64,000 nucleotides of DNA, from sequence record MZ422438.1; one strand, 5' to 3'. Shown here piece after piece: positions 38,815 through 62,101 of this stretch. Every line of letters begins with the position of its first letter. Position 1 is the stretch's first letter. Under the pieces are notes generated by a model, which did no database searches, was not told the origin of the DNA, and was given only the letters and a program-made list of their open reading frames with translations. The translations under genes were made by a program, and so were the position numbers.

Positions 38815-39295
38815 TAATGTATAGCCACACTTATATAGTAATATATAGGTTAAAAATTCTATTAATTGCTGGAAAATCCTAAAGCTTATTTAACTACAAC
38901 GGAATCAGTAATGATAAACGTGAATGTTGTCGAAAGACTGAAAAAATAAATAAGATTAATACATGGTGAAATAAAAGTACTATAATATATAGTATCCTAA
39001 ATATTAATTATAATGGATGATCAGCAGCAGTATTTCTTTAAGATTATAAATGAAAGAAAAAAGAAATGTTGTTCAACGACTATCAAAAGATTATTATATA
39101 AATAATAATTTAGTAGAGTAGAGCCAAGCTTTTGGGTTAGTATTTAAGAGATATTATCTTAATGTAAAACTATTAAATCGAAAAATAGAATTATCCTTTA
39201 GTAAGGATAAAGATATAGTCTGTTCTTTAAGGAAATCTTAAAGAAGTTCATAAGAGAACTGCATAAGAATTAGCGCACTTATGTGAACACGAAAG
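38815..39295 (+). mobile_element. ORF-less group I intron (IA-like, 481 nt) in the DNA polymerase gene
   Basis: P1 GUGGU/GCCAC with a U-G pair at the splice site; P aattgctggaa; Q atcagcagc; R gttcaacgacta (39071-82); S aagatatagtct (39210-21); terminal G 39295. Splicing restores VVDTDSNF. Confidence 0.9.
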
Positions 39296-40220
39296 TGATA
39301 CCGACTCAAACTTCTTGTATCTCAATCACTTTGTCGATTTATTCTCAGAAATTTATCCAGATATTACGATGAAAGAAAATGATAAATCTATTGTATCTGC
39401 CATTAATACTATTATGTATATTGTTACTGAATGTATTAATGAAACGTATTACAAGTATGGAATGGAACTCGGTATTCCAGAAGATAAACGTGGACTAATT
39501 AATATGAAGAATGAATTTCTATATAAACGTTTAATGCTAACAGACGCTCAAAAGAATTATGCTGGCGTAATTTTAATGCAAGAAGGAAATATTCTTCAGA
39601 CTCCTAAGATTGATATTAAAGGATTAGCAATTAAGAAGACAAATACGAATAAACATGTACGTGAAGAATTTTCAGGAATTCTTAAAGATGTCATTCTTGA
39701 ATCAGATAAGATTGATGGTTCTGAATTTATTACTAGATATAAGAATCTAGAAAAAGAAATTCGAAGATCTTTAATGAATAGTGAAATCACATTTACTCTC
39801 CCTAGAACTGCAAATATTAAAGAAAACTACGTAGCACCATATACGCAAGCACCATACAAAGGTGTATTAGTATGGAACACATTATATCCTGATAAAGAAA
39901 TTAACTTACCAAACAAAGTTAATCTTATCAAGCTAAATATTGAAACTTTTGATGATATTGAAAGTAAAACTAATGATCAAGATCTAATTGAACGATTTAA
40001 GAAAGTTTATGAAGATGAGGAATTGACAAAAAAAGGAATTACTTATATTGCTATTGAAGCAGAACAAAAACATATTCCTGAAGAAATCATTCCATTTATT
40101 GACATACCTGAAATGGTTAAGACTCATGTATCATCAGGATCCAAACTAATGACGTCATTAGGATTCAATCCATTAGTAATTAATGGATCATTATTCCCAA
40201 CAAATATTATTAACTTTTAA
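39296..40220 (+). CDS. Family-B DNA polymerase, exon 2 (spliced product 674 aa)
   Basis: Starts T-GAT ACC GAC TCA (DTDS, motif C) in frame with track ORF 39315; MKNEF and QKNYAG follow. Confidence 0.85.
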
Positions 40221-56225: not shown

Positions 56226-56900
56226 ATGCTTAAGATTAATATTAAAGATAATCCTGAACTTAAAAAGAATATTACTTCAAAAAATAAAAAACTCTTTTAT
56301 GATTTCAATACAAATAATCAATCTTTCCTAGAATTAGCTATTGAATTAAAAAGATTGGGAATCAGAAATAATAAGTTACATTTAGTTTTATATGATAAGA
56401 GTCTTTCCGGAGTAGATCCGTATGACCCGAACTTAACTGATAACGTAAAGGCAAGAATTGTTAAAGAGAGCATTATTAATTTTTGGTACTTTATTAGGGA
56501 AGTAGTTCGTATTCCAGTTCCAGGATCTTCAGTCCATTTTGCTATTCATAGAGGGAACCTTGCAATGTGTTTCTGTTTATTAAATAATTTAAATACCGTA
56601 TTAATGTTACCTCGACAACATTATAAGACATATAGTGCTGTAGGTTTTTATTTATGGATTGAATTATTAGTAGGTAGAAACTATCAAATGATCTTTTCAC
56701 ATAAATCATTAACGGATAGTATTGCCAATCTAAAAAGATTGACGGCTCTATTTGAACTATTACCGACATATATGACTGAACCTATCTTAAATAGTAAGAA
56801 TGATAAGAATGCTGAAACTATTTTAACAATTGACTCAATAAATAATACCATTAGGACAATTGGTCCAAGCACAGATATTGCTTCAGCAGATAAGTCAGGT
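56226..56900 (+). CDS. terL: Terminase large subunit, exon 1
   Basis: NFWYFIREVVRIP, Walker A-like LPRQHYKT; ends ...SADKSG at the group I splice site. Confidence 0.85.
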
Positions 56901-58203
56901 TAACTTAATTTTTCGGCTTGACTATAAAACTTTTTTAATTGCTGGAACATCCTTAAGTCTATTAAACTACAACGTAACTGGTAACGGTAAGCGTGAATGT
57001 TTGAAAATTAATAGAATTGGACAATCAGCAGCCAAGCTTCCAATGATTATTGGATGAAGGTTCAACGACTATCGAAAGGGTAAATTTATATTTTAAATTT
57101 AGAACTGAGTAGAGTAGAGCCAAGACAAAAATTTGCAAGTTTACTTGGTTAGTAATTAAGTGACATTAACTTAATGTAATTCTATTAAATCGAAACGGAA
57201 AGTATAGAATAAAAATAAATATATATTATAATAATGATGAGATAATTTATATCTTCTTTAATTAAGATTATTAAAGAGGTGATTATTATGGTAAGAAAAA
57301 ACACAGAATTTGATCTAGTTAATAGAATATCACAAAAATTCAGTAATAATGAATTTACCTATATTGAAGGGTTTAATAGAATGATAGATAAATGTAGATT
57401 TAAATGTAATAATTGTGGAAATGATAATTATTATACTTCGCCATCCATATTATTGGATAAAAATAAATCTATATACTGTAATCTATGTAATCCTGCAACT
57501 TTACGAAAAAATTCATTTATGGATAATGTTAATAAAAATTACACTGTTTTAGAAAAACCTAAAAATAATAAACAAAATATATCTGTAAAGTGTAATTTAT
57601 GTGATTTCATATTTAAAACAAGGTCACAATATTTAACAGCTATGGACAAACCTAGTAAAACTCGAAATTTGTGTCCTAAATGTAATGCATCAAATTCTGA
57701 AAAAATATTTGCAAAATTTCTTGATTCTCAAAATATTAATTATGAAATGCAGAAAAAGTTTAAAGAATGTATCGGTATTAATAATAGAGTCACTCCATTT
57801 GATTTTTATATAGATTCAATGAATCTAATTGTTGAAATTGATGGAAAACAACACGATTCATTAAAATATGCATTCCATAGAGATATTAAAGAATATGAAA
57901 GAACTGTTGCTAATGACAATATTAAAAATAATTTTTGTAGTGAAAATAATATTGGATTAATACGTTTAAGATATAATTGCAAAAGTAAAGAAATTGAATT
58001 CATGGAATCAATTATTGATGCAAAATATATTCCAAACGTAAAATTATCCATAAATGCAAATCTTATTAAATATTAGATATAAATCTCATCAATTTATAAT
58101 TCTGACTCTTCAAATAAAATTTGGAGAGTTTATTATTTTTAGGTTTTTCTATAAAGATATAGTCTATGGGGAGAGAAATCTCTTAAACTTGTTATATTCT
58201 AAG
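56901..58203 (+). mobile_element. Group I intron (IA-like, 1,303 nt) with a homing endonuclease in P8
   Basis: P1 UCAGGU/GCUUGA (56916-21); P aattgctggaa; Q aatcagcagcc; R gttcaacgacta; S aagatatagtct (58154-65); terminal G 58203. Confidence 0.9.
57288..58076 (+). CDS. Intron-encoded homing endonuclease: Zn-ribbon repeats plus a Vsr/DUF559-like (EDxHD-type) nuclease domain
   Basis: Four CxxC pairs; FDFYIDSMNLIVEIDGKQH; ATG 57288 after AAAGAGGTG (the track start at 57279 is GTG). Confidence 0.8.
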   Translation: MVRKNTEFDLVNRISQKFSNNEFTYIEGFNRMIDKCRFKCNNCGNDNYYTSPSILLDKNKSIYCNLCNPATLRKNSFMDNVNKNYTVLEKPKNNKQNISVKCNLCDFIFKTRSQYLTAMDKPSKTRNLCPKCNASNSEKIFAKFLDSQNINYEMQKKFKECIGINNRVTPFDFYIDSMNLIVEIDGKQHDSLKYAFHRDIKEYERTVANDNIKNNFCSENNIGLIRLRYNCKSKEIEFMESIIDAKYIPNVKLSINANLIKY

Positions 58204-58218
58204 CGAGGAATGACCGTT
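58204..58218 (+). CDS. terL: Terminase large subunit, 15-nt micro-exon 2 (RGMTV)
   Basis: CGA GGA ATG ACC GTT joins KSG and PLIWLDE in frame, giving KSGRGMTVPLIWLDEYAF (Walker B region). Confidence 0.8.
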
Positions 58219-58890
58219 GTATGCGCCGTAATGAGTTTATAAAAACTCTAATCAATTTTGAGAATAACGGAATGATAGATAGCAAATAATCTTGAAACGT
58301 TATATCTAATACTCCTACATGCATATATTTATTAAACGGACTATATGTGTGAAGTTAGGTGAAGTCAGTTGAACCACTCCCCTATAACGGGAAACTTAAG
58401 TATTATATACTAAGAGTGTATAGACTGGGATGCGTTATAATATGGTAAGGATATTCTTTAAAAGAATTAGACGAATCAATGAATTAAAACCGTTAAAAAT
58501 TAATCTAACAGGTTAATGAATACTAATAGGGATGAGTAAGTGAGCGGTTATGAAAATCCTATTTAAGTTATGCTCTTAAATTATTATTAGTGCGGTAGAG
58601 TTGGTACCTAAGTTATAACTATGCTATCAAAATTGAAAAGGTGGAAACTAGGAAGATCGTAAAGATGTTTAATGTCTGATCTAATAAATAGGAAATGATT
58701 TATGAATCTTAGTGGCAGCAGCCTGTAGTAGTGATGAAGCTCTTGTAATGAGAGTGGAGTGAAGGGGCATAGTCAGAGATTATATTAACCAAATAATCTT
58801 TGATGGAACGCTGTATACGATGAAAGTCGTACGTACAGTGTGAAGTGGGGGAAAATCCGGAGATAATTTCAAAGGATTACCTATCACTAT
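58219..58890 (+). mobile_element. ORF-less group IIB intron (672 nt)
   Basis: 5' GUAUG; EBS1 AGCGGU (58543-48) pairs with exon ACCGUU; EBS2 UAUUCU (58452-57) pairs with GGAAUG; D3 gcagcctgtagtagtgatgaagctc; short D4; D5 acgctgtatacgatgaaagtcgtacgtacagtgt; D6 bulged A 8 nt from the 3' AU end. Confidence 0.9.
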
Positions 58891-60123
58891 CCGTTAATAT
58901 GGTTAGATGAATATGCGTTTTTAAAATATAATGATACGGTATTTAAAGCAATGCGCCCTGCTTTTACAGAAGCAAGTAAAGCTGCAAGCATGAATGATAC
59001 TCCGTATTCAATACTTATTACAACAACGCCTAGTAATTTAGATTCCGATGAAGGAAATTCATGTTATAATCTTATACAAAATGCAGCTAGGTTTGATGAA
59101 AAGATGTATGATTGGTACTATCAGTTTGGTCCAGAATACCTTCAATCATACTTGGATAAAAACTCTGGTAATGATTTTATATATATTGAATTTAGTTATA
59201 AAGAATTAGGTAAAGATGATGAATGGTTAGAGAGTCAGATTCGGGCAATGTTAGGTGATAGACTTAAGGTTAAGATTGAATTATTATTAGAATGGGTTTC
59301 TAGTAGTGAAGATTCAATCTTTAGTGAAGATATTATTGAATCTCTTGAAGGTAATATTATAAAAAGGGAAAATTATGCAGGATCCATATATTTATGTGAT
59401 GGAACATATAAACTAGATGTTATTAAAAATCCTATAAACTTATTAACTAAAACATACGTTATATCAATAGATATTGCCGGAGGATTAGGTAAAGATAATA
59501 CCGTTGTAACCGTTATTGATCCAGTAGACCTTAATACGGTAATGGTATTTCAAAATAATAAAATTACTGTTCCGGAATTAGAAGATCTTGTTACTGATCT
59601 AGTGTTAAATTATATTCCAAACGCAGTAGTTATTCCAGAACGAAACTATGGTGGGGAACAACTGATTGATTATATTATTAAACATAATTTAATATCTAAA
59701 AATCTTTTTTATGTAACAAAACAAATAACTACTGAAAAGACAATCTTACAAGAAAATAATGTTTTTAGAAAAAGAAGTAATAAAGTTAGAAAAGAAAAAA
59801 GGGTATATGGTATATATACAACAACTAAGACTCGTGATATAATGATTAATACTATCCTTCCAATGATTGTTTATGAAAGACCCGAATTGGTAAATAATGC
59901 TTCCTTATTTAATGATATTAAAACGCTAGAAAGAAAAAGAAATGGTAAGATTGAACATAAGTCAAATCGCCATGATGATAATTTATTTTCATATCTGGTA
60001 GGATTATATGCACTATTATATGAACACTCGATCAGTAGGTTTGTGGATATTATTGATAAACCCGAGTTAAATAAGGAAGATGAATTAGTTGATACCGTAA
60101 TAATACGGGTCAACATCGTTTAA
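58891..60123 (+). CDS. terL: Terminase large subunit, exon 3 (Walker B and RNase H-like nuclease); may extend to 60305 via a frameshift near 60095
   Basis: LIWLDE, LITTTP, ISIDIAGG..KD, PERN, HDDNLFSY; in frame with track ORF 58951. Confidence 0.85.
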   Translation, partial: PLIWLDEYAFLKYNDTVFKAMRPAFTEASKAASMNDTPYSILITTTPSNLDSDEGNSCYNLIQNAARFDEKMYDWYYQFGPEYLQSYLDKNSGNDFIYIEFSYKELGKDDEWLESQIRAMLGDRLKVKIELLLEWVSSSEDSIFSEDIIESLEGNIIKRENYAGSIYLCDGTYKLDVIKNPINLLTKTYVISIDIAGGLGKDNTVVTVIDPVDLNTVMVFQNNKITVPELEDLVTDLVLNYIPNAVVIPERNYGGEQLIDYIIKHNLISKNLFYVTKQITTEKTILQENNVFRKRSNKVRKEKRVYGIYTTTKTRDIMINTILPMIVYERPELVNNASLFNDIKTLERKRNGKIEHKSNRHDDNLFSYLVGLYALLYEHSISRFVDIIDKPELNKEDELVDTVIIRVNIV

Positions 60124-62000: not shown

Positions 62001-62101
62001 TATTTTAAAACAATAAAATATAATCTTAATAAGATGATTTATTTTTATGTTTATTAAGTTTTTTATAAAAAAGATTATAATGAAAGGAATGAATTATAAA
62101 T

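Follow-up and report, generated by a model that had tools for sequence, protein, structure and literature searches.

The DNA analysed here, a window of 64,000 nucleotides, corresponds to bases 62001-126000 of record MZ422438.1, with window base 1 being record base 62001. Window positions 58000-59100 match record positions 120000-121100 with 100% identity. The record is that of Listeria phage LPJP1, a jumbo phage of Listeria grayi (223,580 bp), which is viable and has been propagated (PMC8460666). The gene of its terminase large subunit (TerL) lies on the plus strand at 56226-60123 and appears to be made of three exons separated by two introns, a group I intron followed by a group II intron. 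In GenBank (MZ422438 118226-122123), the two TerL pieces and a homing endonuclease gene (HEG) are annotated as separate hypothetical proteins, with no intron features.

TerL exon 1 (56226-56900) is composed of 225 codons and ends with ..ADKSG, its last base being a U. It matches phrog_32359, terminase large subunit (E 5e-56), and tblastn aligns it to residues 9-214 of the TerL of Staphylococcus phage S6. The stop codon TAA that follows in frame (56901-56903) belongs to the intron. Exon 3 (58891-60123) begins with PLIWLDEYAF and contains the Walker B motif and the nuclease domain; it matches Terminase_6C and phrog_2 and is 48% identical to residues 220-611 of S6 TerL (tblastn). A micro-exon of 15 nt (58204-58218, CGAGGAAUGACCGUU), encoding RGMTV, is located between the two introns. 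At the junctions, S6 TerL, which is intron-less, reads ..ANKAG RGSTV PMVWLDEWAF and LPJP1 reads ..ADKSG / RGMTV / PLIWLDEYAF. The counterpart of the micro-exon is RGSTV in S6 and RGCTV in AR9. TerL is uninterrupted at this place in S6, UFV_DC4, SA1, Goe21 and BpSp, and in these five intron-less homologues exactly 15 nt separate the two TerL tblastn blocks. The S6 alignment and this spacing make the splice sites 58218|58219 and 58890|58891 exact to the codon. The group II intron separates the V and P codons and sits three codons ahead of the Walker B motif WLDE. The nearest TerL sequences among GenBank phages are about 48-50% identical, and a search of IMG/VR for related loci gave no closer TerL relative, with or without introns.

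Neither the micro-exon nor the stretch formed by the first 20 codons of exon 3 has its own start codon, although both are conserved in frame; their translation is therefore possible only once both splicing events have taken place. We take this conservation as indirect evidence for an active intron in a viable phage. Conversely, one may imagine that the intron is a dead relic and that two polypeptides, one N-terminal and one C-terminal, do the work of TerL, as suggested by the separate proteins annotated in GenBank at 56226-56903 and 58951-60123. However, translation from M58951 would give a C-terminal protein without PLIWLDEYAF, the Walker B segment, and the split-protein form of TerL was rejected. 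The conserved, start-less segment, the ribozyme catalytic elements, all intact and compensated (see below), and the viability of the propagated phage (PMC8460666) also argue against a relic, which we consider very unlikely.

The first intron (56901-58203, plus strand, 1303 nt) is unannotated in GenBank, carries a HEG ORF, ends in G and stops 15 nt upstream of the group II intron. A search of 2.25 kb gave a partial match to RF00028 at 56927-57120 (E 1.6e-8); its score, 41.1 bits, does not reach the gathering score of 50, and a whole-window Rfam scan by E-value did not recover the intron. In its 5' half, the intron shares homology with AR9 TerL intron 1, which is inserted at the same G|R codon junction and scores 82 bits on RF00028. 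U56900 precedes the 5' splice site and G58203 is the last base of the intron. Three helices were read from the sequence: P1, between the exon GUCAGGU and the IGS GCUUGAC at 56916-56922; P10, between UUUCG (56911-56915) and CGAGG; and P7, between GACUA (57067-57071) and UAGUC (58160-58164). In AR9, P1 is formed by the exon ACUGGGU and the guide GCUCAGU, and P10 by CUAUG and CGUGG. Hence, P1 and P10 covary between the two phages. The 3' part (P7', P8 and P9) was assigned by eye only, and Rfam gave nothing meaningful on this part alone. With its P3-P8 core, its 5' U.G, its terminal G and its P1/P10 helices, 56901-58203 has the predicted features of a group I intron.

The ORF at 57288-58076 (plus strand), inside this intron, would encode an EDxHD/Vsr-like nuclease with Zn-ribbon repeats. 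It matches phrog_559 (E 3e-36) and phrog_9084, homing endonuclease (E 8e-22), and weakly DUF559. It also shows 34% identity over 115 aa (E 9e-18) with AR9 gp146, the HEG located inside the AR9 group II intron. A 62-aa ORF at 58054-58242 was discarded as a spurious read-through of intron, micro-exon and intron. An earlier note on this DNA, made from the sequence, had described the group II intron, and that part stands; it had missed the group I intron ending 15 nt upstream.

Architecture of the group II intron

To our knowledge, group II introns were long thought to be absent from phages. A 2025 survey overturned this supposed absence, and the LPJP1 TerL intron is one of its 20 curated examples (Merk, Jones & Eddy, NAR 2025; PMC12350094). 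Table S1 of that survey lists MZ422438 120219-120890 in the terminase large subunit, with the model group-II-D1D4-5, as class B, orfless, with triad CGC, 5' GTATG and 3' AT. The authors also report similarity to classified IIB introns of the Zimmerly database (PMC12350094). The element described here is identical to that entry in coordinates, class, triad and 5' pentamer. Thus, its identification is correct but already known, and the intron itself adds nothing new since it is already among the curated examples. The main text and Table S1 of Merk et al. do not mention the group I intron 15 nt upstream or the micro-exon, and the epsilon' compensation and the grouping with RT-free AR9-type introns are both absent from them. 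What is added here is the epsilon' compensation, the placement in an RT-free lineage, and the tandem arrangement of a group I and a group II intron with a shared micro-exon.

The intron spans 58219-58890 (plus strand, 672 nt) and is ORF-less. RF02004 (group-II-D1D4-5) matches 58247-58439 with 94.1 bits (E 5e-19) and RF00029 (D5/D6) matches 58806-58890 with 56.3 bits (E 2e-8). These are the sole Rfam matches in the 64 kb at gathering thresholds. The class IIB criterion of Merk et al. is an epsilon' inside a 4-nt AARC bulge (PMC12350094). The AARC-type bulge of the LPJP1 intron is AAGU (58352-58355), where epsilon' is formed by G58354 and U58355. Together with the two Rfam matches, it bears out the group IIB assignment made in the earlier note.

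The intron's 5' end reads GUAUG (58219-58223), with epsilon at A58221 and U58222, the junction being set by the protein alignment, and its 3' end reads ..CACUAU at 58890. Domain 1 has approximate limits of 58224-58644, derived from the Rfam D1 alignment, a family alignment with RNAalifold and sub-folds. EBS1 (AGCGGUUAU, 58543-58551) pairs with IBS1, exon positions -9 to -1 (AUGACCGUU), over 9 bp. It falls in the same alignment column as the EBS1 of relatives that have different exons, and the helix length averages 7.9 bp with an intron's own exon versus 4.8 bp with the exons of other introns. A candidate EBS2 (UAUUCUUU, 58452-58459) pairs with exon positions -14 to -7 (GAGGAAUG). Support for this 8-bp helix, which has 3 G-U pairs, is moderate: we estimate that a match of this kind would arise by chance in D1 in about 1 case in 3, and its place in the alignment roughly coincides with that of AR9's candidate EBS2. 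For EBS3-IBS3, no clear covariation with the first 3'-exon base was seen in the 10-sequence alignment.

Domain 2 (approximately 58647-58713) was delineated from a sub-fold. Domain 3 (approximately 58721-58768) is closed by GCC/GGC where AR9 has ACC/GGU, a covariation of the pairs. Domain 4 (58772-58804) is reduced to 33 nt, with a 12-bp stem and a 9-nt loop, and holds no ORF. As no ORF of at least 40 aa is found on the plus strand inside the intron, the description of D4 as a hairpin of about 30 nt without an RT ORF proves correct, and an RT/maturase encoded in D4 is absent. Group II domain 5 is a helix of about 34 nt with an AGC or CGC catalytic triad, a 2-nt bulge and a GNRA loop. In the RF00029 alignment, the LPJP1 domain 5 (58808-58841) has the triad C58809, G58810, C58811, a GAAA loop and an AC bulge. 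The CGC triad had been noticed earlier, as had the intact branch point. Group II domain 6 carries an adenosine that bulges out 7-8 nt before the 3' splice site. In the LPJP1 domain 6 (58845-58887), A58883, the eighth nucleotide from the 3' end, is unpaired in both the Rfam alignment and the MFE fold and is the predicted branch point.

Bases 1-5 of the micro-exon are the group I P10 partner, bases 2-9 the candidate IBS2, and bases 7-15 pair with EBS1; the P10 partner overlaps the candidate IBS2 by 3-4 nt. Because P10, candidate IBS2 and IBS1 are all held within 15 nt, the micro-exon serves both ribozymes.

Compensated variants at the 5' splice site and in domain 5

GUGYG is the commoner 5' consensus of group II introns. 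One may therefore ask whether GUAUG was mis-called and the true 5' splice site, at a canonical GUGYG, lies elsewhere. Yet no GUGYG is found within 30 nt of the junction. Only the 58218|58219 junction restores RGMTV|PLIW, the nine bases that pair with EBS1 end at 58218, and the epsilon' base is U, as in other GUAUG introns. Merk et al. made the same call in their Table S1 (PMC12350094). An alternative site is extremely unlikely and was rejected, frame, EBS1 pairing and epsilon' U all fitting 58218|58219. The earlier note had supported the GUAUG end by frame and by EBS1/IBS1 pairing, and both arguments hold.

The variation of the 5' end was followed in a family alignment of ten introns, namely the four LPJP1 group II introns and those of AR9, Internexus, PALS_2, S6, MarsHill and c-st. 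Four IMG/VR introns were added for the epsilon' count, giving 14. The bulge is AAGU in every GUAUG intron (LPJP1 TerL, AR9, Internexus and c-st) and AAGC in every GUGYG intron, including the four from IMG/VR, so that epsilon and epsilon' are consistent in 14 of 14 cases. Since AAGU accompanies GUAUG and AAGC accompanies GUGYG, A3 is proposed to pair with U58355 and U4 with G58354. A compensatory epsilon' change in D1, which the earlier note had suggested looking for, is thus found as U58355 in AAGU, facing A3. As the GUAUG members are all on one side of the family tree, GUAUG/AAGU may be a single inherited compensated event.

A comparable relation is seen in domain 5. In ten of the ten aligned introns, CGC occurs with GUGU on the 3' strand (C-G pair) and AGC with GUUU (A-U pair). 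GUAUG and CGC are also combined in AR9, PBS1 and Internexus. Merk et al. used GWYRG as 5' consensus and describe the triad as "usually AGC or CGC" (PMC12350094). The "non-canonical" label given to GUAUG and CGC in the earlier note is thus not sustained: both are compensated (14/14 and 10/10). From these covariations, GUAUG and CGC read as ordinary compensated variants, not as defects.

Pattern scans for further GUAUG/AAGU relatives in IMG/VR gave AR9 itself, about 8 canonical AAGC/GUGYG introns and many chance matches. An 18-mer common to the relatives (TGAAGTTAGGTGAAGTCA) gave only chance matches in genome contigs and metagenome contigs.

Lineage of the intron and the maturase question

LPJP1 has four group II introns according to Merk et al., three ORF-less and one with an RT (PMC12350094). 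The four are related in structure, and a single Rfam D1 model matches them all. The RT-encoding intron interrupts the DNA-polymerase gene, at record positions 139556-137009 (PMC12350094). Its IEP, encoded at record positions 137137-138933, outside the window and 17 kb from the TerL intron, matches RVT_1 (E 1.7e-27) and HNH (E 3.6e-5). Thus, the search for a related RT in the phage, proposed in the earlier note, finds one.

Over 397 ungapped columns, the TerL intron shares 66% identity with the AR9/Internexus intron and 58% with the RT-bearing LPJP1 intron, a modest difference. In an unrooted IQ-TREE phylogeny (505 columns, ten taxa), in which the TerL intron sits on a long branch, a split with UFBoot 98 separates LPJP1-TerL, AR9, Internexus, c-st and MarsHill from LPJP1-RNAPb, LPJP1-RNAPbC, PALS_2, S6 and the RT-bearing LPJP1-DNAP. 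None of the introns on the TerL side has an RT; they are ORF-less or carry an EDxHD/Vsr-like homing endonuclease. On the AR9 side of the split, D4 is a minimal hairpin in those members that lack an ORF.

The nearest relative is the intron of the virion RNA polymerase beta' gene of AR9, PBS1 and Internexus. It shares GUAUG, the AAGU epsilon' and CGC with the LPJP1 TerL intron, and AR9-type D5/D6 are about 85% identical to those of LPJP1. The Internexus intron is also ORF-less with a similarly minimal D4. In contrast, the host gene and the EBS/IBS sequences differ. The location of the endonuclease differs as well: AR9 and PBS1 have an EDxHD/Vsr-like HEG in D4, whereas in LPJP1 the homologous HEG is in the neighbouring group I intron. 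A tblastn search with the LPJP1 IEP matched 53 phage records, and AR9, PBS1 and Internexus are not among them.

Merk et al. speculate that the RT of the LPJP1 DNA-polymerase intron acts in trans (PMC12350094). In a stronger form, the TerL intron would be spliced and retrohomed only with this RT, and terminase expression would depend on it. The presence in the same phage of an IEP with RVT_1 and HNH matches, and the structural relatedness of the four introns, speak for this idea. A precedent exists in Trichodesmium, where ORF-less introns are spliced by the maturase of a sister intron (Meng, Wang & Liu 2005, cited in PMC12350094). As cited there, the Trichodesmium case resembles that of LPJP1 in that several related introns are present per genome and one alone encodes an RT. 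Unlike in that case, however, the RT-bearing intron of LPJP1 has closer relatives than the ORF-less TerL intron: the two are on opposite sides of the UFBoot-98 split. Moreover, the phages that carry the nearest relatives have no detectable RT, and the TerL D4 retains only the basal GUCA/UGAU stem, nothing like the D4 arm of the RT-bearing intron. Overall, we regard strict dependence on the RT in trans as possible but somewhat improbable.

Maturase-independent splicing, or splicing with general factors only, appears slightly more likely than dependence on the DNA-polymerase-intron RT, because the closest relatives sit in essential genes of RT-less phages. From the tree and the absence of RT, we infer with moderate confidence that the TerL-side sub-lineage can splice without a cognate maturase. 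The earlier proposal that the intron either self-splices or borrows a maturase was a disjunction unable to fail. An RT-encoding IEP does exist in the same phage, yet the intron groups with RT-free relatives. If maturase independence is true, these compact phage introns (about 600-670 nt) would represent natural maturase-independent group II splicing in bacteria.

Proposed splicing and spread, and neighbouring introns

Taken together, the features of 58219-58890 make it very probable that this segment is a functional, ORF-less group IIB ribozyme interrupting LPJP1 TerL. In the proposed mechanism, domain 1 would grip the 5' exon through the 9-bp EBS1-IBS1 helix, and probably through EBS2-IBS2 too. 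A3 and U4 of GUAUG would pair with U and G of the AAGU epsilon' bulge, and D5, with its compensated CGC triad, would form the catalytic centre. The bulged A58883 of D6 would then attack the 5' splice site, as in lariat splicing. Finally, the freed exon would attack the 3' splice site after ..CACUAU and restore ..RGMTV|PLIWLDEYAF... Searches for sequencing runs that could show the spliced junctions listed none. An essential packaging gene would need two different self-splicing ribozymes, 15 nt apart, both working. As they share the micro-exon, the two splicing reactions might have to proceed in a set order, or might compete.

The TerL group II intron encodes no protein and cannot move by itself. 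Retrohoming with an RT supplied in trans is possible. The most economical route of spread would be co-conversion with the HEG-bearing group I intron that ends 15 bp upstream. Mobility by such co-conversion with the group I endonuclease is speculative; hitch-hiking is favoured because the HEG of the group I intron 15 bp away has a homologue within the AR9 group II intron. T-even phages offer an analogy, with trans or collaborative homing of endonuclease-less elements such as T4 mobE with I-TevIII (PMC2790892). There also, an element without a working endonuclease is carried by gene conversion from a nearby endonuclease cut. The T4 system involves group I introns and free-standing HEGs, whereas a group II passenger beside a group I HEG is our own extrapolation. 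We therefore advance only tentatively, and consider rather doubtful, the full scheme in which the tandem pair would reflect an RT-free, HEG-associated and maturase-less lineage that spreads passively when the group I endonuclease cuts an intron-less terminase allele. If true, such introns would be examples of a group II intron spreading via the DNA endonuclease of its neighbour.

The pentamer CCGTT is present at 58214-58218 and at 58891-58895, forming a 5-nt direct repeat that flanks the group II intron. This repeat could be due to chance (about 1 in 1000) or be tied to target recognition.

In the AR9/LPJP1 clade, the part of TerL around Walker B is a hot spot for introns: in AR9 (NC_031039 94700-97900), a stretch of about 55 codons there is interrupted by four group I introns, which score 70-93 bits. 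At or near the same site, TerL of the Staphylococcus jumbo phages Madawaska (MW349129 56200-59700) and Machias (MW349128 57000-62100) has HEG-containing inserts, which Rfam assigns to neither group I nor group II at E<0.01.

The window contains a second group I intron, this one ORF-less, at about 38815-39310 (plus strand), where it splits a DNA-polymerase gene. Of the two flanking ORFs, 37715-38824 matches one half of phrog_2927 and 39315-40220 the half that follows. This intron has no Rfam match at E<0.01; with the core of the TerL group I intron it shares 77-80% identity.
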